A DNA stretch of 64,000 nt from Macrostomum hystrix (lineage: Eukaryota; Animalia; Platyhelminthes). The stretch is from contig CATNEN010000031.1 of NCBI GenBank assembly GCA_950097015.1, positions 558,001-622,000 of the forward strand, given 5' to 3'. Shown in pieces: positions 3,242 to 63,654 of this stretch (positions within the stretch are counted from its first letter, which is position 1; every line of letters begins with the position of its first letter). The notes under the pieces are model-generated. The model was not told the origin of the DNA. It saw only the letters and a list, made by a program, of their open reading frames with translations, and did no database searches. The translations under genes and the position numbers were made by a program.

Positions 3242-5144
3242 CTTGAATTCTGCCCGAATTTTACTTTCCCAATTCTTCCCACCCGTTTAGCCTAATCAGA
3301 TGCTGTGCACTTGACTCAAGAGTAGTAGCCTTTTGGTATCCAAGTCTCCTGATTGATTTTGATGCCCTTACATGACACATTGAAACAAAGAGTGCAAGTA
3401 TGTCATTATTTTTTTTTTCGAATGCGCAATGACTGCCACAATTTAATTTGATTTTTCAGCACATACGAGTAGTACGAGCATTAGTGTGCTTATTTGTCTA
3501 TTTCTTTTCTTTAAAGAAGCTTTCGGTCTTTCTAAGGTACCACAGAAAGAGGGGCTATATTTTAGCTGACATGACCAATAGAAGTGAAATGGCAGAAGCA
3601 ACTGCTATGTAAATCTGGCTACATGAGCTCAACGGGGTATGAAAATAATTTCAGATGGTCGCATATTGCAAAATCTGTTCAAGCTTCGTGCTTAGAATTC
3701 TACAATGAATGGCGCCAAAAAGCGAGATGTACGAGTATAAAGGCTATATTTATCGTGTTAAGAAAGGCGTTTCACTTATTCGAGTAGACGAAACCCTTCA
3801 ATTTATAGAAACCAATGGCTGTGTGCTGCTAAATTTATACGAGCTCGTAAGTGCGTCAGAAGATCCGTTTACGTGAGCATTTTGCCTGTGACTATGCTCT
3901 AATTACGCCCTTTATGCAATAGCTAATTTATGCTCAAGCATGGACTCTGCAGCATCTATTCTCAGATCATTAGTATTCCCCTGAATTTATTTGCTCAACA
4001 AGAAAAACACCGTGTTGTACAGTAGTAATTGTGGCGCATAAATTTAATTTTATGCATGGATTGTACGATATACGCAGATGAAAGTGGCGTTCTGTTCCAA
4101 AGCTTAATCTGTACTTGGATGCAGGGAAATTTCCAGTCAATTCCACTCACCACCCTCACCAGCATTATTTTGTTAATTGTGTAATAAAAAACCTAAAGGT
4201 CGCAGTACGTTCCAAAAAACTGACATTTGACAACTCCCTTACTTTGTTAAGCCAGATCATAAATAAGAAATATACGAGTAAGACGCTGTATTGTAGTGTA
4301 AAATGATTAGAATGATTAGAATGATAACAGGGTGATTATTATTGCTACGGTTATGTTATCGACTATTGTGTCTTTAAAGTGCGGGTTGGTGCTACGAGTA
4401 CAATGTGCGAATGCCAATCCAAAGACTGCTTTTAACTAGGAGCGCAACACCTTGGTTGAAAGGTAGACAATTGGCGGTGGATAATTGACAATGACACAGT
4501 GTGGAGGTGGAGAAGCAAGGTCAGGCTTTAGTGCTCATAAGACAATATGTTGTGTGCAATGCGCTTTGTGACTTTATCAAACGGTGTTACAACTCAACCA
4601 ATTTCTTTAACGGTAAAATATTTGACAACACAGGAATAGCGCATGCAAGCAAGACGATTGTGCTTTCAGCGAATAGTTGAAAAATTATTGTTGACCATGC
4701 GCTGTTTGGCAAGCCTACTCCTTAACGACATGCCAGAATGCCTACTTGTTTTAAGTTCGTAAGATATTGCAGCTTTAAATTATCATTCCGTGCAAAAAGG
4801 TACATCGCGTATTCGGGCAAGCTTGCTGTAATTTTGGGTTTTAAATCGACTTATTGGTGGCTAGTTCACTAAAATGAGAATTAGTAAGACTAACAATCAA
4901 ATAGATAAGCTTACAAACAATAGATATATACGGCACATGTCATACTTATAGTCAACACTAACATGTACGCAGACGAGACAACGTAAAAATATGCTAAGAA
5001 AATCATTGCTTTTTGTAGAACGCGAAAACATAAATGTTAATTTTTTTATACTTCTTACTAGTAGTGGGCTTTGAGAAAAATTATATTGTCCCTTGATTGA
5101 TGATGTCGCGAACTCGATAAACAACGAGGGTCGGAAAGAAGACA

Positions 5145-6218
5145 TCAGCACTCGGCCTTCTCCTCCAGCGGCGCGGTAGCAGCGTGACGCAGCGACTCAG
5201 CCTTGACACTGTCGCCATCTTCGGCAAGCGGGCGCCTCTTTGTGGCCAGCTGGCCGCTAGAAGTTGGCGTCCGCGGCTGCTGTAGATGCGGCTGCGTCAT
5301 GGCCGCAGGGAAACTGGCGCGTTCGACTTCGTATTCATCCTCTTCCGCAGCTTCGTTGCAAAGTGCTGCAGCTTCTTGGTCGGCCAGAAGCTGTAGTGGC
5401 TTGGCGAAGACCAGCTCGTAGATCCAGGCGCCCAGGACCGCGCCGACGTATGGACCTAGCAGCGGCACCCAGAAGTAAAATGACCTCGAGCTGAACACTT
5501 CCGGGCCGTAGCCTAGAGCCAGGGTTGCCAGGCGAGGGGCGAAGTCACGAGCCGGATTCAGACAGGTGCCGGATACGATCGCCTCTGAGACGATGATACC
5601 AGTGACAACCAGGCCGATCAGCAGCGGCTGGAGAGCCAGAGGGGCGTTCAGATTGTTTGGATCTGAGACTGCCCTGGCAGCTAGCAGCAGCAGGGAGGTT
5701 CCGACGACCTGGTCAGCAAAGGCCACTCCATTGTTGATTGCCGGGTTAGGCCCGGTGAAGAAAGTGCCGGCGGTTCCGTTCGGACCAAAGGCAACAAGCT
5801 GGCCTTGATTCAGATTGTTGAAGATCTGGAAGTAAAGCAGGTTAACAATCATAGCGCCCAGAAAGCCGCCCAGGTACTGCGCCCAGTGGTACAGAAGCAT
5901 GTGCTTGAAGCTCATCTTGCGCAGCGTGAACATAGCGAATGAGACCGCAGGGTTGACGTGGCCCCCAGAGAGGCGCAGGCTGAGCATGATGCCAGTCATG
6001 ATACCCAGGCCGTTGCCGATGCCCACAGATGTTATGAAGTTTTTTATGCCTTTGCGTTGAGTGATGGTGGCTAGGCCGCAGCCGAGGTCTACAATGGTCA
6101 CCAGCACCATTGTGCCAACCAGCTCAGAAAAGAATAACTGCGAGGGCCTGTGACGCATCACGAGGCGAGACTCGACTCGCGACCAGGTCAAGCGACGGCG
6201 ATCCTCGTGGGTGGGCAT
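5145..6218 (-). CDS. Aquaglyceroporin (AQP3/7/9/10-like), intronless
   Basis: Two NPA motifs (SGGHVNPAVSFA; GTCLNPARDFAPR, with the glyceroporin-type D after the second NPA) and six hydrophobic helices; TAGTFFTGP; FWVPLLGPYVGAVLGAWIY. First plausible ATG is at 6218 (MPTHED). Confidence 0.93.
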   Translation of the reverse strand: MPTHEDRRRLTWSRVESRLVMRHRPSQLFFSELVGTMVLVTIVDLGCGLATITQRKGIKNFITSVGIGNGLGIMTGIMLSLRLSGGHVNPAVSFAMFTLRKMSFKHMLLYHWAQYLGGFLGAMIVNLLYFQIFNNLNQGQLVAFGPNGTAGTFFTGPNPAINNGVAFADQVVGTSLLLLAARAVSDPNNLNAPLALQPLLIGLVVTGIIVSEAIVSGTCLNPARDFAPRLATLALGYGPEVFSSRSFYFWVPLLGPYVGAVLGAWIYELVFAKPLQLLADQEAAALCNEAAEEDEYEVERASFPAAMTQPHLQQPRTPTSSGQLATKRRPLAEDGDSVKAESLRHAATAPLEEKAEC

Positions 6219-7099
6219 TGGTCGATCTGTGAGTTGGTTAGAGAGGCCGTAATAATACGAGCTAACAGAACAAGCAAAATACACGTCGCACCTTTTAAGA
6301 ATCAGCTCGCGACGTACGAGCTATAAGAACCAAATGTTATAGAATAATAGTTGATTCTTAGTCAACTTCTATCAAATTTTCTAAACTATTTTATACTCGC
6401 TGATTCTGACCACTTCCTTCAGCCGCGCAAAGAGCAAATAGCAGAATACCATAACCTAGTCCTTAAGCTAGCTAGGGGAAATATGAAAAAACATCTTACC
6501 TATTCGAAGGATCTCTTGTCGGAATCGAAGACAGCTCAGTCTGTTTGAGCGGATCCTAAACCGGAGTTCTAGGCTAACTGAGGATAAAGAACAGAGGAAG
6601 GATAAAGGACAACTGAAGAAAGAAAGCGAGGGCTTGGATACCTAGGAGTGGCAGCAGGTAAAATTGTCGAGCGGCAACCAGCTCGATTGGCTGAGTCAGG
6701 CGGTAAATGCAGGTGGGAGGTGATGTCCGGGATGCAGCCTACCTACGTGTAGACTAGAAGGGGCGTGGCAACCGTCACACCATCCTCGTGTGAGCCACAA
6801 GAGCAGAGCACAATGTACGATGCTGGCCCTGTGTCCCGCTGTACTTCTCTGGCCTGCAATCCCAAGGGCTTGGGTCCAGGGGAAGAAGAGAGAGAGGGAA
6901 GGTGAGAATAAGAGAGAGAAGTTGGGGGATTTCGGAAAGGCAGGCAAGTACAATTCCTGATCCTTGCCATTGAGGAATGAAGAAAATATTAGCATAGAAA
7001 GGAATGCCATGCTCATTAGTAGACAAAGGAGTAAAGTTAATACAGGACAGGGAACATGCACCGGAGCAGACTGCCGTCTGTACTCAGATGCGGGCAGAA

Positions 7100-7870
7100 T
7101 CTAAAGCGGTTTAATCTAGTTTTAAAAGGCCTGAAAGGATGAAGACAAAAATATATTTAAGCAATTTTGACTGCATGGAAAATGTGGACTTAAAATAGAC
7201 ATGAGCGAATCTGTCTGCAATAAATGCATAGACTGTAGAGCGGGTGGATTGATTTGAGCTTTCCATGCACCCCAGTTTAAGTCTAAGTGATTGAAGATGT
7301 GGGTTCTATAATGTCGGTGCAGTGGAATGAGCTCACATACTAGGATTAAATCCGACACCTAGGCTAACATTTTGGACTATGCTATGAAAGGTATCTTGTA
7401 CAATTTTGTGCACTGTTACATACAAGCTAATTTAGCGGGGATTTGATGAGAAATACAAGCAAAAATTTGCAGAATACTGTTTGCAGATAGTAGCTTCACT
7501 GATTAGAAAATGCGAGGGTTAATTAGCTACGAGCTAATTGCCTTTTTACACTTACCTTACAGAGTGAAGGTGACAAACAGTAAGTTTTCAAGTGTTTTGC
7601 TTTCTTAATGGCCTCTGTGACTGTTCATACTGACTCTGAGACCTCCCAGGCTTGATAAGAGCTCAAAGTCAGATACGAGCTAAAGAGTCGGTAGAGCTGA
7701 GCTGCACAGGTTGAGGCTTGAGGCCACTGGCTGGCGGGAGGTAAGGGGAGGGGAAGCGGGAGAGTAACAAAACCGGGATAAGAGGGGGCAGCTCCAGCTG
7801 CGGATCTGGCTTGAGCCGGTTTTTGATCATTGAAACATTGTCAGTTTCAAGCACTGAGCCTGTCGAGATT
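7100..7870 (-). mobile_element. Highly decayed CR1/L2-like LINE fragments
   Basis: The minus strand gives NIFLSSSFQAFKTRLNR (~7170-7105), resembling CR1/L2 ORF2 C-termini. It also gives a Pro-rich VQLSSTDS..K.G segment (~7860-7640) resembling the pre-RT linker. Many stops. Confidence 0.35.
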
Positions 7871-8449
7871 TAGTTCAAAGGAGGTAGGCAGTCGAAGATG
7901 TGAAGATGCCAAAGGACTATAAAACACAATGTGAAGAACTCAGTTTTTCTTTGCCAAAGGAATCAACGCCAGTTACTATCTTACCCGCAGTATGGAACTG
8001 GATTCCATGCAAATCTTGTGCTTGTCTAGGAGGGCGTCGCCAATCACTCAATGCACTTTCTTATCTACTTTAATTCTTTACTGTCTAGTCTCATACTGTG
8101 CTCAATGTAAATTTATGCCATTACTCTTGATATTGAAGCGTATTTGCTTCGTTCGGTCCGCGATAATTTTATAGCGTCTGCTCACAAATTTCCATGAGCG
8201 TTGTCAACAATAAAGTACTGCGGCATGCAGATATTTGGAACTGGAAACTAAATTTAGTGTCTTCAATATCCCTTTGCGTTGTTGATACTCTATACTCTTT
8301 GCACTAAAGAAAGTTCTGCGGACTGCTAAGCTGCTAAGCCCACAGCTGTGCAGCAACATACATAAGTACCTTTATTAAATCTTTGCGCCATATTGAACTC
8401 AATTGATTTTGTCGCTGTTTTGAGCACTGTGGTCTAGGACTGGGCAAAA

Positions 8450-10060: not shown

Positions 10061-10519
10061 GCGATCTCTCGTCTCGTTAAAATAAAAAAAGAATGACTCT
10101 TCGCACATTTCTGGATTTCAAGTTAGTACATCAAGTTAGTAGATTAGTAGTTTAAAATGAGAACCGATCTACTTGCAAGTAGTAATATCGCTGTGGACAG
10201 ATTACCTCGACCTGCTTCTTTTTCCATTATTGTGTACTTCATTCTTGTGTACTTAAAGTATGAATTTTTGCTTTATACTCGTAGCTTTAGTCAAAGAGAA
10301 AATCAATGCGCAGGGCAAATATGCGGCTAGATTCATGAAATTGGTCAGAATTACGTAAGAATTTAATGTAAACTATGGTAATTAAGTCTTACAATCTTTA
10401 TAAAAGATGTCAGAATATATATAACAGGGCAATCTTATAATAGTGAGAATCCAGAGCAGATTTAGCTCGAACAAGGTCAAAGCCTTGACGGAGGCGTCTT
10501 CCTTGTAGCATTCAGACGA

Positions 10520-12818
10520 TCAGTCCATCCGCTTAGCTCGCTGCCTCTCCTCGCGCACCTTGGCGGCTAGGTCGAAGAACAGATTCCGGCCCAGAGCGTC
10601 AGAGGCGCACAGCAGCCCGCCGACCAGGCCGCCAACGAAGCCGCAACTGGCCACGTCTTGGCCGGCGCACAGGAGGCCAGGGACGCCAACGTCTGGTCGT
10701 AGACGAGCACAGCCGTCAGCTGAGGTGCGGGCAAGCCCATGATCCAGGCCGTAGATTTCTCCTTGGCGCGAGCCAATGTAGAAATTGTTGGTAACGGGTG
10801 AACCAATCTCGAAGGCCTCAACCTCCAGGTCGGCTAGCTGCGGGTAGATGGCCTTGGTTTGCTCCCATAGGCGACGGCCGATGGCACCTTTAAAGCTCTC
10901 ATAGTCGGCGCCGCGGTGCTTGACTCGGGCGTCAGACCACTGGGCGAACCATTCCCAGTTGGTGAGTGTCACCAACGCGCAGGTCAGTCGGTCCGGAGCG
11001 GCCCGCTGAGCCCAGGTTGGGTCCTTCAGTGAGGGAAAGGACACAAACATCAGCGGAGCGTCAGAGGCTGCGGCCTCTTGCGGGTCGAGAGCCAGGTAGT
11101 CAGAGATGGACTTGTCCAGATTGGCATCCGTGAATCGCCAGACATTCTGGCGACGCAGGCCGAGCGACTCGACGGGCTGGTCGCTGGAAAGCTTTAGGCC
11201 GACAAACACGGACATGGCGGCCACGCCAATCGGCAAATCAGTCAGAAGGCCAGGCAGGCGACCCTTAGGAATACCGGGTGGCATCAATGCTGCGGTGTTG
11301 TTGAGGCCGGCGGCGGAGATTACCAGCGGTGCTCGAATCTCCGTTTTGCCATTGACAAGCACGCCTTCGATGCGTCCTGTGGCCTGATTGCCAAGCAGCT
11401 GGGTCACGCGAGCTCGAACAAGAACCTCACCGCCGGAGCGCCGAATGACCGGCAGGATTGTGTATGCGATCTCGCTGGCCCCGCCGACAGGGTAAAAGGC
11501 GCCAACGCTCTGGAAGTGATTGAACAGCCAGACCTGCATGACCACGGAAGCCTGGCTGGGTGCGGTGCCATAGTCGCCGAAGCAGTAGCTGAGAACTGCC
11601 CGCAGCTCAGCATTGTCTGTCAGGCGCGCCAAGTAAGAGTCGATGCTATCGTCAAGGTGTCTAAAACATTTCAAATGACACAAGTGAAAGCTGGGAATGC
11701 CACTATTCAGAACTAGTTACTCGTAGCTTGAACCCTTTTAGTCTAGGAAAGGTATATAAATACGAGTTAATAAGCTGACACGTACCTGAAGATTGGAAAG
11801 AAGAATTTCAACAAGCCTGACTTGGCAAGAAATCTACTGAGAGTCAGTGGTAGAAATTTCAAAGCCCAGTAAGGCTCCGAGCCTTTGTGCAGCGAGTCAG
11901 CAAAGTCGAAGAATTTTTTCACTGCCTCAGTGTCGTTCGGAAATCTTTCGCATAGGAGGTTGATGAACTTGCGTCTGTCAGCGCTCACATTGTACACCCG
12001 CTTGTTCTCATCGTCCCCGATCATGATGGTGTCGTAGCAGTCGGGGTCCAGCGGTGCCCAGTCCAGCTGGCCATCAGTCAGCTGCAAGAGAAGGGTCGGG
12101 TGCGCTTGCAAGCTGCTTAGATGCCAAAATTTTGGCTCACCTACAGCAGTCAATCTTGATCAAAACTCATCAAGCTGCTTTCCTGATCAACCCATTAAGC
12201 CTCATCAGCAACTCACCTGGTGAACTTATTAATCCTCATCAAGCTGCTCACCTGCTTAACCCGTCAATACCTCATCAGGATGCTCACCTGCTCAACCTAT
12301 AAGTCCTCATTAAGCCACTCAAATAGTCAACACATCAATTCTCATCAAGCCAATCACCTGGTCAACACATCAATCCTCATAAAGCCACTCACCTGGTCAA
12401 CCAGTACACGCATGTCGCGCCCAGGCGCCATCTCCCCGATGTAGTGAATGCCGACATCGAACTCGTAGCCGCGCTCCCAGAATGTGTGACAGCAGCCACC
12501 AGCCACATCATGCTGCTCCAGCACCAGAACCCGCCGCCCAGCCCTGGCAAGGAGGGCTGCCGCCGAAAGACCGCCGATGCCGGAACCGACAACGATAGCG
12601 TCGAGGTTGTCAGGTACTCGGGCCGGCGAGAAGCCACATTTTAGCGATTCGTCGCGCACCGATTGACGAATCTCCACAGCAGAACGAGCTGGCAGCTGCG
12701 ACGGAGGAATAAACGGGTTTGGCGCCTGGTTGCTGCTGCCTGATAAAAGTCGGCGAAGCAGCCAGAGGATACCACCAGCGATGGCGGCGACTCCAATTAG
12801 AGTCAATGAGGCCCACAT
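10520..12818 (-). CDS. RETSAT: All-trans-retinol 13,14-reductase-like (phytoene desaturase family FAD oxidoreductase); exons 12818-12393, 12081-11786, 11660-10520
   Basis: N-terminal TM segment and the Rossmann motif VVGSGIGGLSAAALLARAGRRVLVLEQHDVAGGCCHTF..GYEFDVGIHYIG. Also YCFGDYG, FYPVGGASEIA, FVSFPSLKDPTW, GEIYGLDH and GQDVASCG. Both introns are GT-AG and keep frame (phases 0 and 2). Confidence 0.92.
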
Positions 12819-13744
12819 CTGAATGTTCTGTGTGGAATCGGACAACTGAACTCTGCAGGCAAGCGAATATGGCCTAAATCAGGTAAATTCTGTTAAAAAT
12901 CTAAATTTCAAATGACTGAGCAATTATTTTTTCGAGGCAGAAACAAAACAACAAGTAAAATAAAAATTAAAATCGAACTTATCTCTACAAAGGATCAGTA
13001 GCAAAGGAAAGGGACAGTGGAGTGGAAAGGCTGTCTAGTTTATAACGAAAAGAAAAAGCCGGTTGAAAGCAGTTGTTAGTGCGAAGTAGCAAAGTCCAAA
13101 CGTCTACTGCCTGCACGTTCTACCCCTGGAATATGGGTAGACTGTAAAGGGTATATGTGCGGCCAGTTGTGCAGCGTACATTGTGTGTTGTAAGTACAGT
13201 GAGAGTGCTGATAATGCGAAATTACGACAATCGGAAGATTTTCAAGCGGTGAGTTGAAAGCTGAGCAGTCTAGCTGGACTTTGCTCACTTCAAGCCTTTC
13301 TTATCGAGCAGCAATTTAAATTTTATCTTTGATTCAAAATTTTATTAAGCATTTCGTTCTTTAAACCTGAGTTGATCAGGTATGAAACGCAGTTTTAATT
13401 CAGTAAGTGTCATTTTTAGCTTTTGGGCTGAATTTAATTTTCATAACAAAAAATAAATAAAAGCTGCCGGTGGGAGATGGACCTTGCCTGTTTAAGGCAC
13501 CTAAATGAGACAAAAGTCCAGGCCAGTGATCTGGAACTGGCATCAACTGTAGGTGCGAGAAAAATCCAATTAGCTCGTAAACAGATAGAAATAAAAATAT
13601 TAGAACTGCACATTTTACTACATTTTGGAAGGGTTAAACGTTGAAAACTATACCGAGACAAAGCCTTACGAGTACATTTAACTGCCTACTTAAGGTTCCA
13701 CTTTAAAACATTCGGCGTTCGCAATAGTTTCGCTGGGGGATGTA

Positions 13745-14617: not shown

Positions 14618-15067
14618 TAATTGGTTTTGTAAATTTTGTTTTCTTTTTTCGTACATTTTTGCACTTTGTTAGTATCTAAATTTGTTATTCTCTTTGTAAA
14701 TCAGCTCAGAGTAGTAACGCACGTCACTCAAGCGTTGGGGTTTTTGTACCGCCTATAAGTTATGTTAGAGTTTACTTAACAAATTCAAACGCCTCGGTCA
14801 ATTGGAATTTTTAACTCAAATATGTTAAGTTAAATTAGTTTAGAATAAGTTCGATCATTGTATATAAATTGCCGTCTGATTTACAACCACAATTCACTGT
14901 GAAACATACCTGCAGTTTTGAGTAGTACAGTTAGCCAATATCTGTTGCTCAAAATCAGTTCGAAGTTTATTTTTATCTGAAAAAAACTAGCCAGTATATA
15001 AAGAATGTATGTGTCGGAACTATATTCCTCCAATTCTTAGCCTTGCATTCCTAATGGACTTTTAGTC

Positions 15068-15307: not shown

Positions 15308-16003
15308 CACTAGGAAGCCTAGCAAAAATCTACCATTCAGCACCTTAGTTGCAGCTAAACTTATTTATTGTCTATGACCTCATTCTTTGCGTTTACCACC
15401 TTTATATCTATGTGCAAGACCTCCTCTCTGATACAGGTTGCTCTTAGCTTTGCTCCCCTCTAGCGCGTCCAATATTCTTCTTGCTGCTTTACCTTTTTGC
15501 TTCCACTGCCATGAAATAAACTCTATCCAAACTGCTAATTAGTTTGTTGTCCAAGCGACGGTATGTAACAGTGTGACATTATTAAACTAATACTACGGGG
15601 ACTTGGAGCCCATGAGCAGTTGATTTTTTAACGTTTTTAGCTACGAGTACATTATCTACCTCATATCCGTTTAAGTACAAAAGTATAAAAGTACAGCATA
15701 ATTTTGCGCAAAACAATACTCGGAGATCGACTAGCGACTGTGGTAGAATACTGGATATACTTACTGAATGAAACGTGTAAGGTACTAAAATTCAACATAA
15801 ACAGGATTTGCCCATTTGTTTCTCAAATAGTGTTCATGGCAAGCATTCTAGTTTCGATGCAGTATTGAAATTTAAATGAGGACTCACAGTAACTAATGCA
15901 ACTAAGTTTTTGAAACCGTGAGCAATGGACCATGTTTGATTTTTCGAGGTGACAGACGATGTCTGTTTTCACAAAAATTCTTCATTTATCCTAAAGCTGT
16001 CCT

Positions 16004-19000
16004 TCAAGCATCCTCGTCACCGACTTCCATCGCGACGGCGCCATTCTGAATTGCCATGGCAAGCACTGCGGCTGCAGCTGCCGTGCCGGGCTCAACGCTG
16101 TTGGTTCGGCTGCGCACGTCAGAGATCACCCGCCGGCGCACATCCGGATAGTCAGCCAGCGCGCCCACAACGGCGTCGTGAACAGACACGTAGACGCAGG
16201 ACGACCGATCAGGAAACTCACTGCGCTCCAACATCCGCCGGAACCGGTGAGGGCAGCAGGCGAATAGGAGACTGACACCGGCTTTTTTATAGTCTACGGC
16301 CAGCGTCTGTAGAAAGCGCGCGCCGACGCTGTCGACATAGTTGACACCGGAGCAGTCCAGCACAATGTGGTGCAGGCTTTCGTCTTCGCGGCGTGCCAGC
16401 TTCGGATCAAAACCTGTCAGTTTGGTCAGCTTTTTGCGGAAGTTCTCCACGCTGGCAAAGTATAAGGCTCCGTCGAAGCGGAATACCACCACGCCTGGGA
16501 CCTGCGAGCGTCAGGTGAAGGATTTCTTGCCTATTCCACTTAAAGGACTTCCGTTTCAGTTTAATTCCAAGTAAGCAAAAAATATTGGCATTGAGGAAAC
16601 AATCGTTGGATTCAGAAAAAGAATAGAAATGATGGCGAGCTTGGTTGCTTTGAATATCCCTTCAGCTTTTTTAGAATCATTTAGAATCATTACAATCATA
16701 TGTTAGAAGTACGCATAACGAAGTGGAAGTTAGCGCAACATCTTAAATCTTTGACTCTCAGAAAAACGAAACCAAAGACAACATAATAAAGGATTAGCTA
16801 CCTGCACAGCACATGGATAATATTTGTAGTCTTTGTAGATGTCTGTCAGCGGCAGACGGCCCAGAATCGATACCCTTGGCGACTGGGTTCTGCACACAAC
16901 AGTCAGCAGGCTGTACGCGAAACCGATCACCAAACCATAAGTGACGTTAAGCACAACCACGCCAACAAAGCAGACCGTCCAGATGCTGAAGTCGAACTTG
17001 GAGACTCGATACAGGTGCTTGGCGTCGGCAAACTGCATTAGTAAACCCTTTAACGCCACCACGATGATGCAGGCCAATACAGCGTTGGGCAGCTGGCCGA
17101 ACAAGGGGCCCAGAAATAACAGCACGAACAGCATGAGAGTGGCCGACACAAGGCTAGACAGCTGTGTCTTTCCGCCCAGTTCAGCTTGGACCTGCGTGCA
17201 ATAGGAATCACATGGGCTACATTACTGAGCTGCATATATGGACATACCAAAAAGTGGCTGAAAATTTAGTCCGACATACGAGCGTAAATGCAGCCCATTC
17301 TACGCTTTTTGGCAAATAACATAACACAAGAGAATGCATGGAATATTCCATATTCTAATACGAGGAAAGTACTTTCGGCGCACAAGTGTCTTAATTCCAT
17401 CCGGATCGAGGCCATGAAATTACCACAAATGATCCACAAAAAACGAGTGTATCATTTTAGTTACCATTGTAAACATGAAAATATTATATTGGTAGAAAAT
17501 AGCTGACACGAGCGACTAAAACAACAGGTGAACCAACACGGCTACATAGCATACAATTCACCTGTAGTACGAACGTAGTGATGACAAAATGTAACTAACC
17601 TGAGAGCGGCTCAGCGATCCGGCCGAGAAGTAGCAGCCAAATACAGGCCCGACTGTGTTCACTAAACCGTAAGCGAATAGTTCCTGATTTGCATCCAGTA
17701 GATAGTTATTCTTGTCTGCGTAAATTTTGCACACAGAATAGGTGCAGACGTACATAACTACTGCCAGTAGCGCAGCGTCCTGCAACAGGAGAGGCCAGAT
17801 CCGAACGCTGGGCAGTTGCGGAGCAGCGATGCCGCTCGGAATGGCGCCAACAGTGCGAAGGCCATATTTTGTCTCCAGGTTGGCCAAATGGGAAACGGTG
17901 GTTGCACCCACAACAAGCAGCAGTTCGATGGGCACGGGGAAGCGGCATTTCTGTCGCAGTCGATCACTTAGGAACAGGCGATATACTAGCAGCAGGGCCA
18001 GAGAGATCACGGACACGAGCACGCTCACCGGGTTGGTTTCACCCAGGCGGCGAGCTGCATCAGCGTAGAATACGGCCAGCTCGAAGTGGCTCTCGCGTCG
18101 CGGCACCCGGATGCCAAAGATGGCCGGCACCTGCCAGCGGATTTAGAGTTTGAAGCTGAAGTCAAAGAGCCTGATCAAGCATGCCGCAGTTTGGCTAGCA
18201 AAGTTAACCTTGCTAACATCCCTCATAATATGCCAACATAGCATGCCCCTACGAATTGAAAACCCACCTGTGAGCTGAGCACATGAAGCGCAGCTCCCGT
18301 AGTGAAGCCGGAAACCAGTGGGGTGCTCAAGTACAGAGTGATGAAGCCGAATCTTAGTACTCCTAGTAAAATTTGCATCAGGCCAGCCAGCAGGGTGACA
18401 CTCAGAGCAACCTGGGTTCTGTACCATGCCTTCGCCTCGCCTGATAGTGGGCTGCCTGTTGGCGTTGAGATTGTCTCATTGGCATCCGAAGGCATCGGCG
18501 GTGGGCCGAGGCTGTCAATGAGCTCCTGGGATGGCAGACGACCCGAGCCTCCGGCCAGACGGGACACGGGCTCAGCCAGCATCAGGCTTGCGATGGCAAA
18601 TGTGCCGATGCTCACCTGAATTGTGTTCAGAAATGAGAGATGAGCCTCATTTTCAGATGCTTTCGCATTAAGGGCGACCATGCTCAACCATGGTGGATGG
18701 GTATTATATGCCACAAGCCTGGGCACACTTTAGTTTTTTATGAAATTCGTAAATATATATTTGCAAATATCAGCGCAAAGTTTAAAACTAATATCACTGA
18801 AAGTGCAACTAGCCTACAACCAAGCCCAACCTGCACACCTGTCTCGACGTTCCAAACAAGAAGTACAAGAGAAGCGGCACGAAACCCAGGTAGAGGCCGC
18901 ACACCGGCGGCAGTCCAGCAAGCAGGGCGTAGGCCATGCCCTGTGGGATATTCATGATGCCAACGGTCAGGCCGGCAGCTAGGTCAGACAGCAGGTCGTT

Positions 19001-22689: not shown

Positions 22690-23761
22690 TCTATCACTAG
22701 GTTTCGAGTGCGTAAATAGTCTTGGCACGAGTGCGCGTAGCGTTAAATCTACCATTAACCAGTCGAAACTTCCTCAAGCGCCCATTCCCAGCACATAGAA
22801 AAAGCAGTCCCACAGGCTGCTCCGCAAAAATTGCTGTCGTATTGAACTTGGTGTGAACTTTGCGCTGCTGCTGCAACTGCAACGCTCTCGAAAATAGTAG
22901 ACCTCACCAACTATATCGGCTGGTGCAGAAGGGTCAGCACCAGTGGAAGGGTCGGCACGCCACGCTCGTAGCTACTCAGACAGTGGCCCAGCAGCATCCG
23001 GCTTCTCCAGAAAAGGCTGCGCCGTGGCCAGGGGCAATATCACAATTGTTTTCGACTTTTGACGCTGACATGCTGGCCCTCGGACTCTGCCCCCAGTCCA
23101 CTGCGACCTGTCCCTCACCTGTATTGCAAACGCATGCGGGCAAGGCTGTGCTCTCTGCTTAGTGATATATACTCGTTTGTCCTATCAAAATAAAATAAGC
23201 TCGTATTATCGTGATATATAAACTGTCTCGTTATCAGTTTTGTTTTAGCTGTAATAACAAACCCCGCTTTGTAAATGAACTTTTGTGCTAACTGCAACAT
23301 TACTCACCTAAAAAATGGTATCACTCGAATATAGCGAACGATGCGAGTACACGTAAGTCTTGTACCAGGTCTACAGCGCTCTTTACAGAGAAGTCTGTAA
23401 AGAGAATTCTTTTTTGTTTTTCTACTTAATATTAGCATGTTGTAATGATTCTGTGAACATGCAAGCTTACAAAGAATGCACAAAAATTCAATTATTATAA
23501 GAAACAGTCCGAGCATCATATATATATATCTGGTGCTTTTCATTTCATTGGGAGACACGGCTATAAAAGCCTTGCTAGATAAACAAACAGATTCCAGCAA
23601 CAAGGATAGCTCTTTTGAAGTCACATTTCCAAGAAAATCTCCTGAATACAACAGATACAGTACGAATTCCAACGTCTTCCTATTTAGCAATGAGAGTCAC
23701 AATTAACCATAAATAGCCATCGCGGAGTCAACGAAGGAAACTACTCGTAGTTCTAAAAATA

Positions 23762-29642: not shown

Positions 29643-29669
29643 TTACAGACTTTCCTCAATTACCCCAGC

Positions 29670-45464: not shown

Positions 45465-45635
45465 CTCAACTATTGCAATGAGACAATGCCCTGCACTGCC
45501 CATCTGTATTAATTATATTTTCTATTTTACCAAATTTATTGACTACTTGACAACATACCTCAACTATTGCAATGAGACAATGCCCTGCACTGCCCATCTG
45601 TATAAATTATATTTTCTCTTTTACCAAATTGACAC
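45465..45635. repeat. Local tandem duplication, period ~94 bp
   Basis: CTCAACTATTGCAATGAGACAATGCCCTGCACTGCC... at 45465 and 45559. Confidence 0.85.
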
Positions 45636-50541: not shown

Positions 50542-52591
50542 CTGCTGCTGATGTTCCTCATCTTGTGAAAGAATTGGGTGAACCGATAATGGAGAGGTAT
50601 CAGTTACATTCAGGACAATATGGATTTATTAGTTAACTAATTAATACGCGTACTAGTTCTGTTTCTGATATCCAGAATATTATCTATTCTCTGGAGAAAA
50701 ATGTACTTTTGGTAAGTACACGCCGCGATGCGATCAATCGATTAGTTATCCATCCGTCTCTATTCGTGCAACGATTCCAACTGCTGAATTCCACAAGTCT
50801 TAAAAATGTTTCTATGTATTTAAATCTATGTAAACATTTTTCAGCAGAAGGTATTCAAACCGATACCGATGCAGTTTCAGAATGAAAATTACCTATCGAA
50901 TTACACTCGATGCACCCATTTGTAATTTGTTTAGATTTTTATTAAATCTGCTAAGCCTAATTTGCAATTGTTCTACAGTCCGCTATACAGTACAGCAATT
51001 CCACTGTTCCAGAGACCGAAATGCCTGCTCACCGCTGCTGCAGTGCATGTTGGTCCAGACGAGCAGCTACTTCCAATTAGCGATTGCAATCAACAGGTTG
51101 CCTTAAATTGCAAATCGTAGCGTCGCTGTGATCGCTACTCGTAGTCAGATTGTCTTGAAGGTTCTTGAATGCCTTTCTGGGCCAATCCCTGATCAGATCA
51201 GCGGCTAAACTGAGACTACCAATTGGAGAAGCTGTAGCACTCTTGCTCATGCTTCGCATAAGTATGAGACATTCTGCGCCATGTGCCCACGAGTACATAC
51301 CGTGCCTTTTTCACTCATTTAAACTGAAACAGATGCAGTCATGTTATCCGTATTAGTTTTTCGCAACAGGCCTAAAGTTTAAATTTCTATTCAAATTACT
51401 ACAAGTGCATTTACCATTCTGAGCATGCAATCATAGGCGACTACCCGTTTAAGTCTCAATTTTACGCTAACTAATAGCGTAATTGCCTTACGCTATATAG
51501 GTATATTCGAAGCTTTTAATGCGTTGGTAGGAGTATATATTTATACGTTTATCATTAAGAGACATGCTCTCATCACACATTAAACAAGCATCAAAACTTA
51601 CGTTCAGCTATAGGATCCCAAATTTACCTTAGCCTTTCACTTTTTTGCTCTCGCATTCGTGTAAAGTAGACAATTAAAAAAGTTGGCGTGCATTACTATT
51701 AAAAATTACCCACGCAACTCTCCTATAGTATTAATACTCGATTTAAAAAAGCAGCAAACAGTTCGTCTAAAATATTGTTCCTCAAAAGAATAGAATTTGA
51801 AATAATTCTGCTGCAGAATGACATTCGATCAGTAAGGTTGCAATGCAAACGAAACCTCATATTTACATTGTTAGGTAAATAATAACATTCACACACGATT
51901 CATGTTTCAATTGAAACTATTATCTAGCTCATATTCCTTCGAATGTAGGAGTGCAGGCTTAAGAGACTGTTACTTAACGAAGTAAACAAATCATTTGTAA
52001 TGGTAAACGTCCGTTTAATTATAGCCTGTTGTATACTTGTTCAGTCTAAATTTTAAAGTTCAAGAACTCTAAATTACCCTGGCTCTAATACATACATCTC
52101 ATTGATAAAACTAAAATCTTTGGCACAGACTTCCTGACGGGAAAGAACTCAGGTTTTGCTGCAGTCCGAAGCCGTTTAGTGCTAGATCAGTCAGTCCTCA
52201 GTCAGAGGAAATCAGAAATCCTCAGTCAGAGGATTTGCCATTAACGCCCGCAAGGCATGGGTATTAATGGTATATTAACGGGCAAGACTTTCTGCCCGCT
52301 GGGCAAAAAGGTCATGGTGTGGCGGCCAAGCCCGCACGCAGCGCCGTCTGCAGTGCATTCACACTCAAACCTGGGCCTAGCCTAGGCCTAGCCGAGGGGT
52401 GGGAGCACCGCCCGCCGGCGCGCTAAGCCGTGGTGTTTTGACTCACGCCACGCTCTCGCACCTCCCCACGCTCAATATAAAAAGAACTTTTGATAATAAA
52501 TTTGTTTATGCATCTTTTCTCGCCGCATTTCATTTTGCGAGACGCTAAATTGGTGAGCCCGACCGCCCCAGCCGTAGCTGAGGTTACCATC

Positions 52592-53284
52592 ATGACTGAG
52601 TCAGCCGTCGCACTCAAACTGCCCACCTTTTGGGCCTCCCAGCCCAGGGCGTGGTTCATACAGGTCGAAGCCCAGTTCGCCCTGCGTAAAATTACTGATG
52701 ACAACACCAATTATTGCCATGTCATCGCCGCGCTCGACCAGCAGACAGCCGAGCGGCTTCTTGACGTGCTGGAGAAACCGCCAACAGTGGAGAAGTACGA
52801 CGCACTGAAAGCTCGTCTGCTCGGAACTTTCGGCCTCACCCGGGAGAAGAGGGCCAGCCGCCTACTCAGCCTCTCCGGGCTCGGTGATCGACGGCCTTCG
52901 GAGCTAATGGAAGAGATGCTGGCCTTGCTCGGAGACCATCAGCCTTGCCTTATCTTCGAGGAGTTGTTCCGCCAGCAACTGCCTGCCGATGTCCGGATGG
53001 CCATGGCGACCAAAGACTTCAGCGAACCACGCACAGCAGCGCAGCTGGCCGATGAGTTGTGGGCGAGCCACCCGCAGCCAGTGGTTGCCACAGCCCAGCA
53101 GCCTGCCCAGTTGGTGGCCATCGCGGGCCGCAGCGAGACCAACCGCAAGCCCTACCAGGACCGGCAACCGCGGCAGCGCTCAGATGATGGCCTATGCTAT
53201 TTCCACCGCCGCTTTGGGGCGAAGGCCCGTCGCTGCGAAACTCCGTGCAGTTTCCAGGGAAACGGCCAAGCCGGCCGTCAGTGA
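52592..53284 (+). CDS. gag: Gypsy Gag (230 aa)
   Basis: LKLPTFWASQPRAWFIQVEAQF...LGDRRPSELM...CYFHRRFGAKARRCETPC (CHCC-type finger of CsRn1-like Gag). ORF intact. Confidence 0.88.
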   Translation: MTESAVALKLPTFWASQPRAWFIQVEAQFALRKITDDNTNYCHVIAALDQQTAERLLDVLEKPPTVEKYDALKARLLGTFGLTREKRASRLLSLSGLGDRRPSELMEEMLALLGDHQPCLIFEELFRQQLPADVRMAMATKDFSEPRTAAQLADELWASHPQPVVATAQQPAQLVAIAGRSETNRKPYQDRQPRQRSDDGLCYFHRRFGAKARRCETPCSFQGNGQAGRQ

Positions 53285-53301
53285 ACAGCTCGACGGCCGG
53301 C
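53257..53301 (+). promoter_or_regulatory. -1 programmed ribosomal frameshift signal (gag-pol)
   Basis: Slippery G GGA AAC in the gag frame (53257-53263), a 6-nt spacer, then a perfect 10-bp stem GCCGGCCGTC (53270-53279) / GACGGCCGGC (53292-53301). Pol is in the -1 frame. Confidence 0.8.
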
Positions 53302-55040
53302 AGCAACAGCAGCTTGCTACTCATCCCTGACATCCAGACGCGCCGGCGATTCCTGGTCGACACTGGCGCTGAGGTGAGAATTTTCCCCGTCACCGGCACA
53401 GACTCTCGCCTGCATTCACCAGGTCTGCCGCTCTACGCGGCTAACGGCAGCGTCATCCGCACTTTCGGGACGCGAGAGCTCACGCTCGACCTGGGAATCC
53501 GTAGCTGCTCCTGGCCGTTCATCCTAGCAGAGGTCTCTCGCCCGCTCATAGGCGCTGATTTCCTTCGCCAGCACGGCCTGCTGGTGGACCTGCCGCACCG
53601 GCGGCTTCTGGACGCTCGATCGCTTGCCAGCGTGCACCTGCTGGGCAGCACGGGGCCCGGACTGCAGCTCGCCGCAGCCGCTGCTGCGGATCCGTACAGA
53701 CAGCTGCTGGCGGAATTCCCCGCCCTCACCGAGCCCAGTTTTCAGAAGGCCGAGCCTCGCCACGGGGTGGAACACCACATCCCGACCAACGGCCCGCCGG
53801 GTCACGCCCGCCCACGCCGCCTGCCACCGGACAAGCTGGCGGTGGCCAAAGAAGAGTTCCGGCTCCTGGAACAGCTTGGTATTGTGCGCCGGTCCCACAG
53901 ACCGTGGTCCTCGCCGCTGCACATGGTGCCTAAAGTCTCTGGCGGTTGGCGGCCCTGCGGCGACTTCAGGCGACTCAACGACGCCACCGTGCCCGACCGC
54001 TACCCGGTGCCGCACATTCAAGATTTTTCGTCGCGCCTGGCCGGCTGCTCGGTTTTCTCCAAAATCAACTTGGTGCGCGGCTACCACCAGGTGCCGATGG
54101 CCGCCGCCGATGTGCCTAAGACCGCCGTCATCACCCCGTTCGGCCTCTTCGAGTTCCTTAGAATGCCGTTCGGGCTTAAGAATGCGGCCCAGGCTTTCCA
54201 GCGCTTGTCGACTCTGTCTGCCAGGACTTACTCGTAGATTTCGTCTTCGTCTATATAAACGACTTCCGCAGCCCACAGCAACACCTGGAGCACCTGCGTA
54301 CGCTGTTTCAGCGCCTGGCCAGCAACGGTCTCATCGTCAACCCGGCCTAGTGCGAGTTCGAGTTCGGCGGCAGGGAGATCGATTTCCTCGGCCACCGGAT
54401 CAGCGCTGCCGGCGCCGTGCCGCTGCCTGCTAAGGTCGACGCTATCGTCCGTTTTACGCCGCCAGCCACCATCAAGGGCCTGCAGGAGTTCGCCGGAATG
54501 GTCAACTTCTACCACCGCTTCATGCCGGGGGCCGCCCGGCTTCTGCGCCCCATCCACGCGGCCATGGCCAGCAAGGAGAAGCTCGTCCGGTGGACACCCG
54601 AACTGACAGCCGCTTTCGACGGGGCGAAGCAGGCGCTGGCCGCTGCCGCTATGCTAGCGCACCCTCGACCGGATGCGCCCATCGCCCTCACCGTCGACGC
54701 CTCAGACACCGCCGTAGCCGCGGCGCTTGAGCAGCGGATTGGCGGCGCCTGGCAGCCGCTCGCCTTCTTCAGCCGGCAGCTTCGCCCGCACGAGCAGAAG
54801 TACAGCGCGTTCGATCGTGAGCTGCTCGCCCTGTATCTGGCGGTAAGGCACTTCCGCTACTTTTTAGAAGGCCGCACCTTCACCGCATTCACAGATCACA
54901 GGCCACTGGTGGGATTTGTTTTCGTCCGGTGGGATGGCCATCGAGCACCGCTGCAGAAGCCCTACGACGGCCCATTCAAGGTCATCCAGCGGGGCGACAA
55001 GACCTTCCTGTTTGACCTGGGCACGCGACGCGTACAATAG
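53257..55040 (+). pseudogene. pol: Gypsy pol (protease, RT, RNase H, fused integrase C-terminus), disrupted
   Basis: FLVDTGAE; WSSPLHMVPK..WRPCGDFRRLN; GYHQVPM; TPFGLFEFLRMPFGLKNA; VYIND (from YIDD); DASDTAV; FDRELLALY; TDHRPL; PYDGPFKV. Frameshift near 54205 and TAG at ~54348. Confidence 0.9.
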
Positions 55041-57467
55041 TTATTTTACTGCATGTGCTTCTCAAGTTTTTTTAGATGACTTAACTGAGGGCCTATAGTT
55101 TCATACATTTGAAGCAAAGTACGAGCTATATTAGAAGCATAGTTATGGCTGTAGAAGCAAAGTATCTTCAAATCTCGACAGATTATCAAATAAAATAAGA
55201 AACGTTTGCGCGCTGAGCTTCCCGAATTGAGCAGTTGCGAATTTGAGAGCATTGAGCATGAGAGATGTCGATGGAATGACTGAATGAGTGATCAAACATG
55301 CACCCCGAAGTGTCGAGCTGACTTTAGCTTGCTCCTGACTGATGCCAGCTACTATCCTTCTCATAGCCCCTCATCCCTGGTGCTCAGCAGCGGCATCATT
55401 CAGGGCGCGCAGCAGCGGAGCTTAAAAGCGCACGGGGCATACGTTGGCGTGTCCCTATATATATGCAGCAGAGTTTTTTTCAACTGGGCTTGCAGGCCTC
55501 ATCAATATTTAGCGCAGTGCTGGGTTCCTCCGTGTTACTCGTAATTCAGCGCTCACTCTGACGGCACTCGTTCTCTCTTTTCACTAAGAGTGGCCCAGTA
55601 AAAGCCGCCCGCGAACTGCATGGAGGCTCGCAGTTGTATTTCCTCGCAAGTCGATTAATATTGATTGTTAGCCTGCTCTGCCTGATTTGCTTCGCTGAAG
55701 AAGATGAAGCGCAGAGTCTGTTTGATGGCGACAGGGAGATGAATGTTGGCAATAATTCCAGCAGCTGTGCACCTCCATGAGCCAGTTCTTTTTGCTAGAA
55801 ATAAATAATTCAGCAGGATGGGAAAAAAAGTGCGAAAATATACGACCTATTTTCGATCAATTGCTTCGCCTGAGCACCCTATGAGGAGTTCAAATACGAA
55901 TCGCACTGAACCTGTGGGATTGTAGCGGGGCACCTGACCCTCCAAAACTACCTCGACTTTTCGCGAAGGATTTTTTGCGTCCTGAACAGCTAAATTTTCC
56001 AGTCATATTCGCTCATGAAAGCTTTTTATTTAATATAAGTTTAATGTGCTCGTAAATTACCTATAGATTTTCTTCTCAGATTAATTTCATTGTCTCTTGT
56101 CCCATTTTGTCTTGCACAATACTTATCAATGTCGCTATAGTACAAGCACAGACGTGGTAGGTACACTTGAGATTTCAAGCTCAGCCAGTGCAAGACACAC
56201 TGGTCTGATCTGATACTGTTTCAATTAAGAGTATAAATAGAGAAATTATGGCGTCTTTCTGCGTTAGTCTTTAAGTCTATGAGCTTCATATAATTAATCA
56301 TTTACTTTGCCGTGCATGGCCGTAGCCATGTGCTGTTGCTATACTTACCGTGTCTAGCTGCCGTCATTAGATGTAAAGATGGCACTGATGATTTGACATC
56401 TCGGCTTTCTGTATCTTCCGTGTGTCAGAACTGCGTGAACCCTGCCCACTTCCAGTTAGCCAATTCTTTTTGCTAGAAATGAATAATTCTGCAGTACGGG
56501 AGAAGTCCGAAAATTTATACGGACTTATTTTCGATCGATTGCGTCGTCCAAGCACCTATGCTTACAAAAATTAATGCTGAACCCATCGGTGCGGGGTTTG
56601 TTTGTGCCTAAACCCTGAAGCGTACCCTTGTGACGCTTCATATGAGCTTAGCTGCTACTTTTATATTATAATGAGCGTGTAAACAGCATGGACATTGACG
56701 TTAGATTTTCCTTATGGTAATATAACCAAGGACCACTATAGTTATTTAGTTCCATAGTTGTATAGTTTTGTATTTCTACACTAGTCCTTGAATAGCCCCG
56801 AACTTGTTGATTAAACTTCAAGTTGTTACTTCAAATGAAGAATGTGCGAGCTACCTGTCTCTGACCTGGTGTACTAAGGAGATAAAAAATCCTGCGCAAT
56901 TTTTAAATATTTAAACTATTTTGTTCGCTGCTGCACTACTGGAAGCAGTTAAGAAGGATCCGTTATTATATAGAGACTCGCTCTCAAGGAGGAAACAATT
57001 ATCTGCTCTGCAGACAGGCAAAATTGAAGGCAAATTATAAGGGCGTGTCCAAAAAATGCCTGAAATGTCCGAGCTAAGAAATGTGTGAAATTTGTGCTCA
57101 CCTGTGTACAATCGTACATTTTCACTCCTCATTTGCAAACCTTAATTATTCGCTTTTAGAAAGAGGTCTAGGCCACTCACTGCGCCCCTACATCGAACAG
57201 TATTTTTCGCATTCAAAACCGAGCATTTATAGGCCAGTCAATTTGTTCTCTCTCTCGAGCTGGCTGGCGCAGCTACGTGTCAGCAGGCACTAGCTGGGAA
57301 CAGGCAAACCCCGCCGTATCAGCTGCCCAATAGCTGATAAGGCCCCGAGCAGGTGCTCGGAATCTAGTGTCGCAAGTAGACCTAATAGAGCTCGGGCTCT
57401 GTTGTGCATTGCAGCACAGAATTTCCCGAGGCGCAAGGTAGAATAAGGCAAGCCTACACTAGCACAG

Positions 57468-61000: not shown

Positions 61001-63654
61001 TGCTTTTTCTTTTCTGTTTATTGCCATAAAACAATTTCTTATCAACATTAAAGTAAGTTAAGACACTAACCAGTTGTGCTTCCATAATCATTGGTACAAT
61101 AATTATATCACATCACACTTTGGGATCTCTGTTTTCATGCTTTCTTGTCATGTTTCACACAATCAGGCTACTTCTTTTGCACCTGTGTTGCCCATCTACA
61201 TGTTTTTTTAACACTTATTCTGATATTTTCTTACTGGAAATCCTTACATGTACTAATTATGTAAAACATTATATAAGCTATGAGAATGAGCCTTTAGACT
61301 TAAGTTGGATGGCATTTTAGATGCTTATATGCATTTTGTGTATAATTGGGCATTTTTTGTTTTTTTATTTACAATTTTTTTGTTGTATAAGCAGAGATTG
61401 TTTGTGCCTACAACTTTGTAGGTTGGGGTTTGTACTCATAGGTAGGGATATAGCAACATATTTCTATTTTGTATACTAAAAAACAAAAAAGTTTTCTGGG
61501 AATCAAAACTTACTTAATTTGTTACAACCACCATGTTCAGATCAGAAGACTTATTTACTAAAACATTCCACAAGCACTTTAAAGTAGCTATGCTAAGCAA
61601 ATTCTTTTGGGTCCCTAAAATCACCATAGATTAGTAAAAGGCTAGAGCTAATATGATGCAACATTTTTATCTTTTTGGCTTTCATTTAAGTCTCTTGAGT
61701 TAAATCACAGATAAGGCATCGTTGCAGTTATTATATTACTTTTTCAGCTACATTGACTATTAAAAAACCAATGGATCTATTAAAAAGAATAGTTGCTGTT
61801 TTGACAGTGTCACCAATCTCTGTGGTTGCTGTTACAGCTACAGTCAGCTTCATCTACTGGGACACTTCACGCACCTACCGAGAGAGAAAGGCTGGTAAGT
61901 ATGTTTTGTGCAAAAATTCTTGAAGCTTTTTTCACTGTTGTCATTTGGCGTTTACTGTTTACAATTTGGTTTTTTCTTTCCCAGCACACACATCACACAA
62001 TTATTATATCTCCCTCGAACTCTGGTCATAATAATAATAATAATAATAATTGCAGGGTTCATGGGTTAAATTTTCCATCAACCCCATTACCACAAGACAA
62101 TTAATTCTATGCAATAGCTGGGACATGCAATGAAGGGAAATTTTAGGCAATGGCACATCATTTGGTGACACAAGACCCGCAGCTAGCGTAGCGAGGAGGT
62201 AATTCTGAATTGAGCCCAGCACACATGCACACAGATACCGTGCGCAAACATACGCTCATACAGGTGTGTACATCTGCTCTGATTTTCTCATAGTCTGTCA
62301 CTGTACACTGCTCTGGTTGGCCGTAAGGTTGGGCGAAAATGGCACAACGGCCAAGCCTTCTCACCACATGGCTGCGCCACAAAGAAATGTGGCCTCGCCT
62401 CGAAATCGAGCTAAGGGAACTTGGTGCGAGAGTGAGGTGTGTTAGACTGCTTTGCTACTCACCCCCCCTTAAAGAGAAGTCGCGTTTCTTGCTCTTATCG
62501 ATGTAATGAGTTTAGAGGCAACAAGGTGAGCCGCGGCACTTTGACGACGTTTTGATTTATCTCGGGAGACGAACCATGGTGATTAGGCGGATGCTAGATG
62601 ACTTAGCCTGTTAAATTCACTAGAACTTAACCTTATTGAGCACGCCTGGACATGCTGGCAACTCTGTACCAGCTGTTTAACGTGCTGCAGGAAGAATGAC
62701 AAGAGAGTTCAATTCAAGACAATAGCCCACAGATTTCGGACTTAGGGCGCGTGGTAGCTGAGTTAGACAATCGTGAAAGGCAAAACTCTACTTACGAGTA
62801 CTCATGGACTGTTACTTTTTAACCTAGCACCATGTTTTTAGAAGTTTTTAGAACTGCCAGGCCAGGGGCCTTGATACTTTTTAGACACTTTCTAAAATGT
62901 GTCAAGTAGTTTATTTCTAACATTTTGTAAGTGTATGCGTGGGATCGAGCTTGGTATGCATTTTCATAATTTTTGCATTTACTTAATGCTTGGTTACTTT
63001 TTGCAGAACTGGAAGAGACATCTAGAAAGGCAAAGATTGCAAGGTATGTTTTCCTAGTGACTGAAATACGAGTATATTTACATAAAAAAATAGGTTTTCT
63101 ATCGGAATTGTGTTTTTATTCCAGAGAGTTAGTGCAACAACAACAGGCTTAGGCTTCAAATTTGCCGGCTAACTGATTTCCTTTGACTTTACTGTAGCAC
63201 TTGGTTCATGTTTTTTGCTCATTGATACTCATTTTGCCTTTCCTGTTGACTGAAATAAATACCGATAATACTGGCTTTTAGTTCCGAAGGAAATCAAATT
63301 CTCTTTGTACGAGTATGTGAGTACCAATTTCATGATCTTGGTCTTTTAGAATGACATGACACTGATCTGATCTATGTCTATATACTCGTAGATATATACG
63401 ATCTGAAACTTTTAACTAACTGAAAAAATATAATCATAAGCAACACATTTGTCTTACAACTTCGTACGCTGATTTAGTCACACAAATGCTGAATAAAAAT
63501 GCGAAATCCAATTTTTTTGACAAACTGACTCTCATATTACGCGACCAAAATGTCCGAATTCATTTTTTGACAACGCATGGTAATATAAAGGAACTGTTAA
63601 TTAACTTTAAACAATTATATTAGGGCTTGAGAAACTATTTTACATTAACGGCGT

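Follow-up and report, generated by a model that had tools for sequence, protein, structure and literature searches.

Abundant TA-CGAG-TA octamers in the genome of the flatworm Macrostomum hystrix are probable excision footprints of a TA-targeting transposon

The genome of the flatworm Macrostomum hystrix is strewn with an eight-letter word, TA-CGAG-TA, and its complement, TA-CTCG-TA, which most probably are the footprints left on excision by a cut-and-paste transposon of Tc1/mariner type that targeted TA, started with CGAG, ended with CTCG and was excised with 4-nt 3' overhangs; we put the probability of this reading at roughly 0.85. The analysis starts from a window of 64,000 nucleotides, positions 558001-622000 of contig CATNEN010000031.1 (C31) in the 220-Mb, 42-contig assembly GCA_950097015.1; by the window we mean this whole stretch, and positions are counted from its first base. 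Excision scars of this kind had been proposed in a preliminary description of the same DNA, and the proposal is supported by a genome-wide excess of the octamer and by an exact gain of six base pairs at a TA at position 54229.

Enrichment of the octamer in the window and genome-wide

A pattern search of both strands returned the same 21 exact copies that the preliminary description had picked out by eye, 13 reading TACGAGTA and 8 reading TACTCGTA on the plus strand; at all 21 sites, CGAG or CTCG stands between two copies of TA. Dinucleotide-preserving shuffles of the window lead one to expect 0.99 ± 1.10 octamers, and none of 100 shuffles reached 21; 1.15 are expected under an order-3 Markov model of it, and the earlier zero-order expectation of 2-3 copies was a fair one (about 2.3 by our calculation). 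The TACGAGTA class ranks first among all TA-N4-TA words in the window, followed among those that contain G or C by the palindrome TAGGCCTA with 13 copies, the remaining words having at most 6 each. The word is also sharply defined, its 21 exact copies lying far above any single-mismatch variant (6 or fewer). The 45 bases on each side of all 21 octamers are unrelated among copies; the octamer is therefore not a repeat family. Over the 3,891 TA sites of the window the octamers show no significant clustering (variance/mean 1.39, P ~0.10), and their density in this gene-rich DNA is about one per 3 kb.

Genome-wide there are 16,450 copies, with the two complementary versions about equally frequent (8,103 forward, 8,347 reverse). 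A control word matched in composition, with one CpG and with TA flanks, TACGGATA, occurs 1,893 times, some of these within one tandem array; the octamer is thus enriched about 9-fold, with roughly 14,500 excess copies, which bears out the expectation that the scars would extend throughout the genome. The reversed word of the octamer, which carries no CpG, occurs 8,051 times. CpG depletion is marked in this genome (635 copies of TACGCGTA and 1,893 of TACGGATA, where the reversed words number 2,438 and 5,149 respectively), and reversed-word controls are therefore misleading for patterns that contain CpG. Since the genome mean is about 4.8 octamers per 64 kb, the window is about four times denser; repeat-rich loci amounting to 134 kb hold 2 octamers only, and it is evidently in older, unique, gene-rich DNA that the scars gather.

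A six-base insertion at a TA site

One octamer can be compared directly with its ancestral state. The copy at 54229..54236 (TA-CTCG-TA, minus strand) lies inside the reverse-transcriptase frame of a decayed retroelement (about 52303..54912, plus strand, with DUF7041 and RVT_1 domains) that has many copies of 67-93% identity and serves as the reference for this scar. All 15 aligned copies lack exactly the 6 bp present at 54229, and the nearest paralogues (two loci, L017 and L018, 91-93% identical) read GGACT-TA-GATTT where the window reads GGACT-TACTCGTA-GATTT; an unbiased scan for indels among the repeat copies finds the same 6-bp event. The octamer at 54229 therefore arose by a six-base insertion at a pre-existing TA in the reverse-transcriptase frame, exactly as had been predicted for the word, and this retroelement copy gained its scar after it had itself inserted.

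Mining of 4-12 bp indels among repeat copies for a wider spectrum of such events was given up because repeat-rich loci hold too few scars. A search for paralogues of the octamer-rich ends of the window returned a single match, a high-copy repeat of about 320 bp (62146-62470, for which the genome offers 1,567 or more candidate copies, about 75% identical, resembling a short interspersed element (SINE) or a MITE (miniature inverted-repeat transposable element)), and no homeologous region.

Longer forms of the scar

Three longer words accompany the octamer. The 12-letter palindrome TACGAGCTCGTA, TA-CGAG-CTCG-TA, keeps both ends; the genome has 263 sites of it where its control word has 4, a 66-fold enrichment, and one of them lies at 3838..3849 (unstranded) in the window. 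The flanks of 21 copies in 20 fetched stretches (one stretch having two) are unrelated. Several of the 12-mers stand in dense local mixes of scar words, for example CTCG-TACGAGCTCGTA-CGAGCTA-TACTCGTA at locus L071; such clusters are expected, because each scar supplies a new TA target. An inverted four-base pair between two TAs is what is expected when both ends of an element with terminal inverted repeats are joined without overlap.

The 9-letter form TA-CGAGC-TA occurs 6 times in the window against 0.33 expected, and 5,124 times against 1,203 genome-wide. Over the 220 Mb, the copies in excess number about 14,500 for the octamer, about 3,900 for the 9-letter form and about 260 for the 12-letter form. 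The 10-letter form TA-CGAGCG-TA recurs in the window (17277..17286, plus strand) and at other loci, and C follows TACGAG at 16 of the 30 non-octamer sites in the window. The word TACGCGTA, which stands for mixed repair of the two central positions, is not enriched, its 635 sites lying below the control count of 2,438; the two central positions were therefore resolved as a block. In the window, TACGCGTA occurs once and TACTAGTA twice, both near expectation. The latter was dropped as a test of mixed repair; it occurs in a simple tandem repeat.

Target-site signature

When the scar is removed in silico and the bases around the original TA are compared with those around all TAs of the window, scar sites carry A or T at ±3 more often than the 61% of the background: 83% for window octamers (P 0.0016), 82% for octamers in other loci (P 0.0066), 91% for 12-mers (P 9e-6) and 88% for 9-mers (P 0.0046). 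The preference appears independently in the four scar classes, is symmetric and lies outside the word itself. Position ±5 leans towards G or C, A and T are equally frequent on both sides, and ±1 and ±2 are not distinctive; the match to known systems is therefore one of position, not of the full motif. The target motifs of Tc1 (CAYATATRTG), Tc3 (AWATATWT), Minos (ATATATAT) and Sleeping Beauty (RCAYATATRTGY) all have A or T at ±3 (PMC2577343, Table 1). The shared signature links the three forms, of 8, 9 and 12 letters, to a single agent that chose its targets in the manner of Tc1/mariner elements.

Age and fixation

The one-mismatch variants of the octamer in the window sum to 49 against about 31 expected, an excess about equal to that of the exact word, and the commonest of them, TACAAGTA, is a product of CpG decay; these counts suggest a mean scar age of very roughly 0.1 substitutions per site. 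The stretch 3000-8999 was found in eight public sequencing runs, four of which (X2-X5) were compared. All four behave as transcript assemblies, with a poly-T contig end at position 4243 and, at 6226-6500, a CT..AC joint, and in X4 and X5 the covered stretch differs from the assembly by several single-nucleotide polymorphisms. The preliminary description had looked to presence/absence polymorphism between strains; none appeared, the six scar sites covered by these transcript-like contigs (3730, 4273, 4393, 6256, 6315 and 7528) carrying the scar wherever contigs cover them, without a 6-bp gap. Because independent runs contain them, the scars are real and not assembly artefacts; they are transcribed where exonic, and they are fixed among these samples. 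The scars are, then, old and fixed.

If the scars are neutral, the number fixed would equal the rate of formation per genome per generation multiplied by the generations elapsed, and about 15,000 scars over about 0.1 substitutions per site would correspond to a rate between about 1e-4 and 1e-3 scars per genome and generation, given mutation rates of 1e-9 to 1e-8. The very active family supposed in the preliminary description is not required: long-lasting moderate activity with end-joining repair would give the same tally.

The order of events can also be read at one locus outside the window. In L055 (2090-2120) a TAGC-type Tc1 copy has its right end immediately against TA-CGAGCG-TA, which is followed by TAT and then by TA-CTCG-TA; a younger element therefore landed in a TA of an older scar cluster. 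Locus L056 is the same sequence as L055, the 3.4-kb locus being present on two contigs (C10 and C41) in opposite orientation.

Positions of the scars and the surrounding genes

The window is mostly single-copy, and alongside the retroelement it holds animal genes for an aquaporin (MIP), a sulfate permease and an ABC1 kinase. On the plus strand, the octamer TA-CGAG-TA begins the window's series at 3464..3471, with another TACGAGC 1 nt further on (3473), and recurs at 3730..3737, where it is unchanged in sample X4; both were located by pattern search. The copies at 4273..4280 and 4393..4400, present in X2-X5, lie in the 3' untranslated region (3'UTR) of the last aquaporin exon, which corrects the earlier statement that no copy falls in a confidently called host exon; that statement holds for host coding sequence, taken as open reading frames (ORFs) of at least 150 amino acids, where there is none. 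The copy at 13667..13674 is 76 bp from an unrelated Tc1 remnant, and that at 47510..47517 stands 12 nt beyond the end of the ABC1-kinase ORF, at a probable intron start. Pattern search and flank comparison place the other plus-strand octamers at 15642..15649, 38561..38568, 39386..39393, 42332..42339, 62793..62800, 63067..63074 and 63308..63315, and those on the minus strand (TA-CTCG-TA), apart from the one in the retroelement, at 10276..10283, 11718..11725, 23742..23749, 33933..33940, 51136..51143, 55536..55543 and 63383..63390. Immediately upstream of the scar at 38561 there is a tandem array (37801-38150), recognised from repeated BLAST hits, whose period is about 40 bp.

Three 9-letter variants on the plus strand are present in X2 and X5: two in the aquaporin intron (6256..6264 and 6315..6323) and one at 7528..7536. 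Pattern search adds two more on that strand (7674..7682 and 55120..55128) and one on the minus strand at 13571..13579, where the plus strand reads TAGCTCGTA; the 10- and 12-letter forms were located in the same way.

The structure of the aquaporin gene (4242-7653, minus strand) was read from the transcript contigs. Its 3' end, marked by poly-A, is at about 4243; contigs span 4242-6228, the coding exon extends to 6226, and an intron occupies 6227-6499, with an alternative joint at 6226-7556. Two alternative 5' ends, at 6675 and 7653, both run into one identical 21-nt sequence that is absent from the stretch 3000-8999 and is a common upstream exon or a spliced leader.

A second TA-flanked word

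A second scar-like palindrome between TAs, TA-GGCC-TA (TAGGCCTA), has its 13 window copies at 29145, 42898, 42918, 42966, 43548, 44379, 46189, 52383, 59452, 59679, 59883, 60116 and 60213, significantly clustered (P ~0.003) in 42.9-46.2 kb and 59.4-60.2 kb. It is found at 11,338 sites genome-wide against 1,968, with kilobase-scale hot spots in which copies stand in tandem at 6-bp offsets, an arrangement that suggests repeated visits to the same site. At 52383 the window has extra sequence relative to paralogues, in a complex alignment (8 bp). Like the CGAG scars, this is a TA-flanked 4-nt word with a net gain of 6 bp; unlike them, it has a palindromic core, clusters strongly at the kilobase scale and lacks the ±3 preference (A or T at 57% of sites, against the 61% background). 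It is therefore the work of a different agent, or of a different mode of targeting, from that of the CGAG scars.

Mechanism and comparison with known transposons

From these observations we infer the existence and nature of the element and the chemistry of its overhangs. The element would insert at a TA and duplicate it; on excision, each flank would keep its TA and a CGAG overhang (4-nt 3' overhangs on the donor, as inferred for Minos), and the two overhangs would pair with each other at their outer positions (C:G and G:C), with two mismatches in the centre. This heteroduplex would be resolved as a block to CGAG or CTCG, by replication or by long-patch repair, leaving an emptied site that reads TA-CGAG-TA or TA-CTCG-TA with a net gain of 6 bp; independent repair of the mismatches would additionally yield CGCG and CTAG, and joining without overlap would give TA-CGAGCTCG-TA.

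The 9- and 10-letter variants hint that the element began with CGAGC and was sometimes cut 5 nt in. Were that so, pairing of the terminal GC could yield the 12-mer and a mismatched overlap of 4 nt the 10-mer; even then, the 9-mer would require a join without pairing.

Members of the Minos group have a Tc1 transposase and long terminal inverted repeats (about 255 bp) that begin with CGAG, and Minos itself begins with CGAGC. Its footprint, in the work of Arca et al. from 1997, reportedly consists of the four terminal bases plus TA, in two versions that arise through an overhang heteroduplex. The likeness of the M. hystrix scars to this Tc1-family element of Drosophila hydei extends to the TA target, the 6-bp footprint and the A or T at ±3, as in ATATATAT. 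The differences are that the present host is not an insect, that ±1 and ±2 are without preference here, that the frequent 9-letter variant is not known from the description of Minos, and that no Minos-like element, terminal repeat or transposase was identified in the loci searched. With Sleeping Beauty, Tc1, Tc3 and mariner the scars share a TA duplication with overhang bases, two versions from a mismatched overlap, and palindromic target motifs with A or T at ±3; those elements, which begin with CA or the like, have 2- or 3-nt overhangs (a net gain of 4 or 5 bp), in contrast to the 4-nt overhang starting with CGAG here. Tc1/mariner excision leaves 2- or 3-nt 3' overhangs, the footprint being the overhang between TA duplications (PMC3878927), and that of Sleeping Beauty is C(A/T)GTA (PMC3878927; PMC2874221). 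The 4-nt stagger had been called unusual, for which the 6-bp footprint of Minos (PMC10992017) is a precedent; by this comparison, the footprint mechanism would be of a known kind. Our literature search found no account of such scars as a genome-wide population, nor any in Macrostomum.

The search for the source element and points against excision

Several results weigh against the excision reading, the foremost being the missing source. The assembly has at least 763 DDE_3 and at least 238 HTH_Tnp_Tc3_2 candidates, many with open frames of 340-460 amino acids; a shallow search covered the window, the tips of the 30 best of the DDE_3 loci and a pool of about 307 kb of sampled DNA, and found no element of the form TA-CGAG...CTCG-TA in any of them. 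None of the 30 tips starts with CGAG, most reading TA-TAGC(A/T)TTTTGCAG; no inverted partner lies within 6 kb of any TACGAG site in the window; and the 307 kb show no recurrent extension after TACGAG besides the scar forms themselves. Candidate remnants fared no better. Sites of the form TACGAGC-N8-38-GCTCGTA are in excess (51 against 19) and have no common interior sequence; the sequence TACGAGCAATCAATTT in locus L062, 27 nt inside a long terminal repeat, is a rare word and internal to the repeats (7 hits, of which 6 are internal); and the Tc1 remnant in the window ends in TA-CACTCAGC.

Three further points belong on the same side. The gain of 6 bp is directly checkable at one of the 21 octamers, 54229, which was the sole testable case when paralogues were sought in the pooled sequence for 28 scar sites, 20 of the 21 octamers having no covering paralogue. 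The common 9-letter form is not predicted by simple pairing of 4-nt overhangs, and the 5-nt CGAGC with its extra C is predicted neither by pairing nor by trimming of the tips of 4-nt CGAG overhangs. Finally, the parallel with Minos, whose CGAG ends reportedly yield exactly these two words, is general background, and we found no paper that links the octamer words to Minos.

The source element may be extinct, rare or non-autonomous. As to the transposons that were found, many of the DDE_3 candidates have intact frames of 340-460 amino acids and near-identical long terminal repeats of the inverted-repeat/direct-repeat type, and the lineages among the 30 loci read (L033-L062) look recently active; several of these share the tip TA-TAGC(A/T)TTTTGCAG and an inner motif GAGCA(A/C/T)TCAATTT. 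The Tc1 remnant in the window (13743-14619) is internally deleted, has 88-nt terminal inverted repeats about 88% alike, ends in TA-CACTCAGCAAC and retains an HTH_Tnp_Tc3_2 remnant at 13982-14200 on the minus strand; it is unrelated to the CGAG scars.

Alternative explanations

The alternative that survives best, improbable as we judge it, is that some other TA-specific process writes the word, such as a domesticated transposase or nuclease whose breaks are mended with a fixed templated filler, and that no CGAG-ended element ever inserted. It would account for the failure to find a source element in a genome where intact Tc1-like families with other termini are abundant, and the 9-letter variant shows that the chemistry is incompletely understood. 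Against it, the inverted pair of CGAG and CTCG between TAs is a prediction of terminal inverted repeats, and in the doubled TA one sees the target-site duplication that an insertion makes; we know of no host process that writes fixed filler at TA sites.

Less credible still is a protein-binding site, a transcription-factor or insulator motif held by selection in regulatory DNA. The Drosophila DNA replication-related element (DRE), TATCGATA, is a TA-flanked motif, and a short TA-flanked word that is enriched in gene-rich DNA, missing from host coding sequence and seldom found in repeat-rich loci is what such a site could look like. A binding site that evolved by substitution would not, however, look like the 54229 event, a 6-bp insertion in a reverse-transcriptase reading frame; the octamers occur with even spread at TA sites, whether in UTR, in introns, between genes or in a dead retroelement; their profile is sharp, with no variant tolerated; and neither the 66-fold enrichment of the inverted 12-letter doubling nor a symmetric ±3 preference outside the word speaks for a bound motif. 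This explanation is largely refuted.

An origin of the octamers as pieces of a dispersed repeat or a MITE, or as a side effect of base composition, sequencing or assembly, is refuted: the window does hold high-copy repeats, and other over-represented 8-mers that derive from repeats, but the flanks of the octamers are unrelated, nearly all (20/21) lack a covering paralogue in the pooled sequence, no shuffle reproduces their number, the matched word is about 9-fold rarer, and independent runs carry the scars.

Conclusions

Read as excision footprints, the octamers form a genome-wide fossil record of a process whose footprints are usually examined at single loci in the laboratory. They tally past cut-and-paste activity, which copy counts cannot do, and reveal the terminal bases, the stagger of the cut and the preferred targets of a possibly vanished element. 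They also constitute a measurable class of 6-bp insertions in UTRs, introns and dead retroelements, and serve as datable markers that can be ordered relative to repeat insertions.

A more speculative extension, which we think doubtful at present, is that of a "ghost" transposon: a Minos-type family that would have jumped tens of thousands of times and then been wholly lost, leaving some 15,000-20,000 six-base scars. If this were true, the scars would preserve the terminal bases of the lost element (CGAG, probably CGAGC), along with the geometry of its cut and the targets it preferred, and excision would have supplied this genome with small in-frame insertions on a major, countable scale, beside a second lost family that wrote TA-GGCC-TA.

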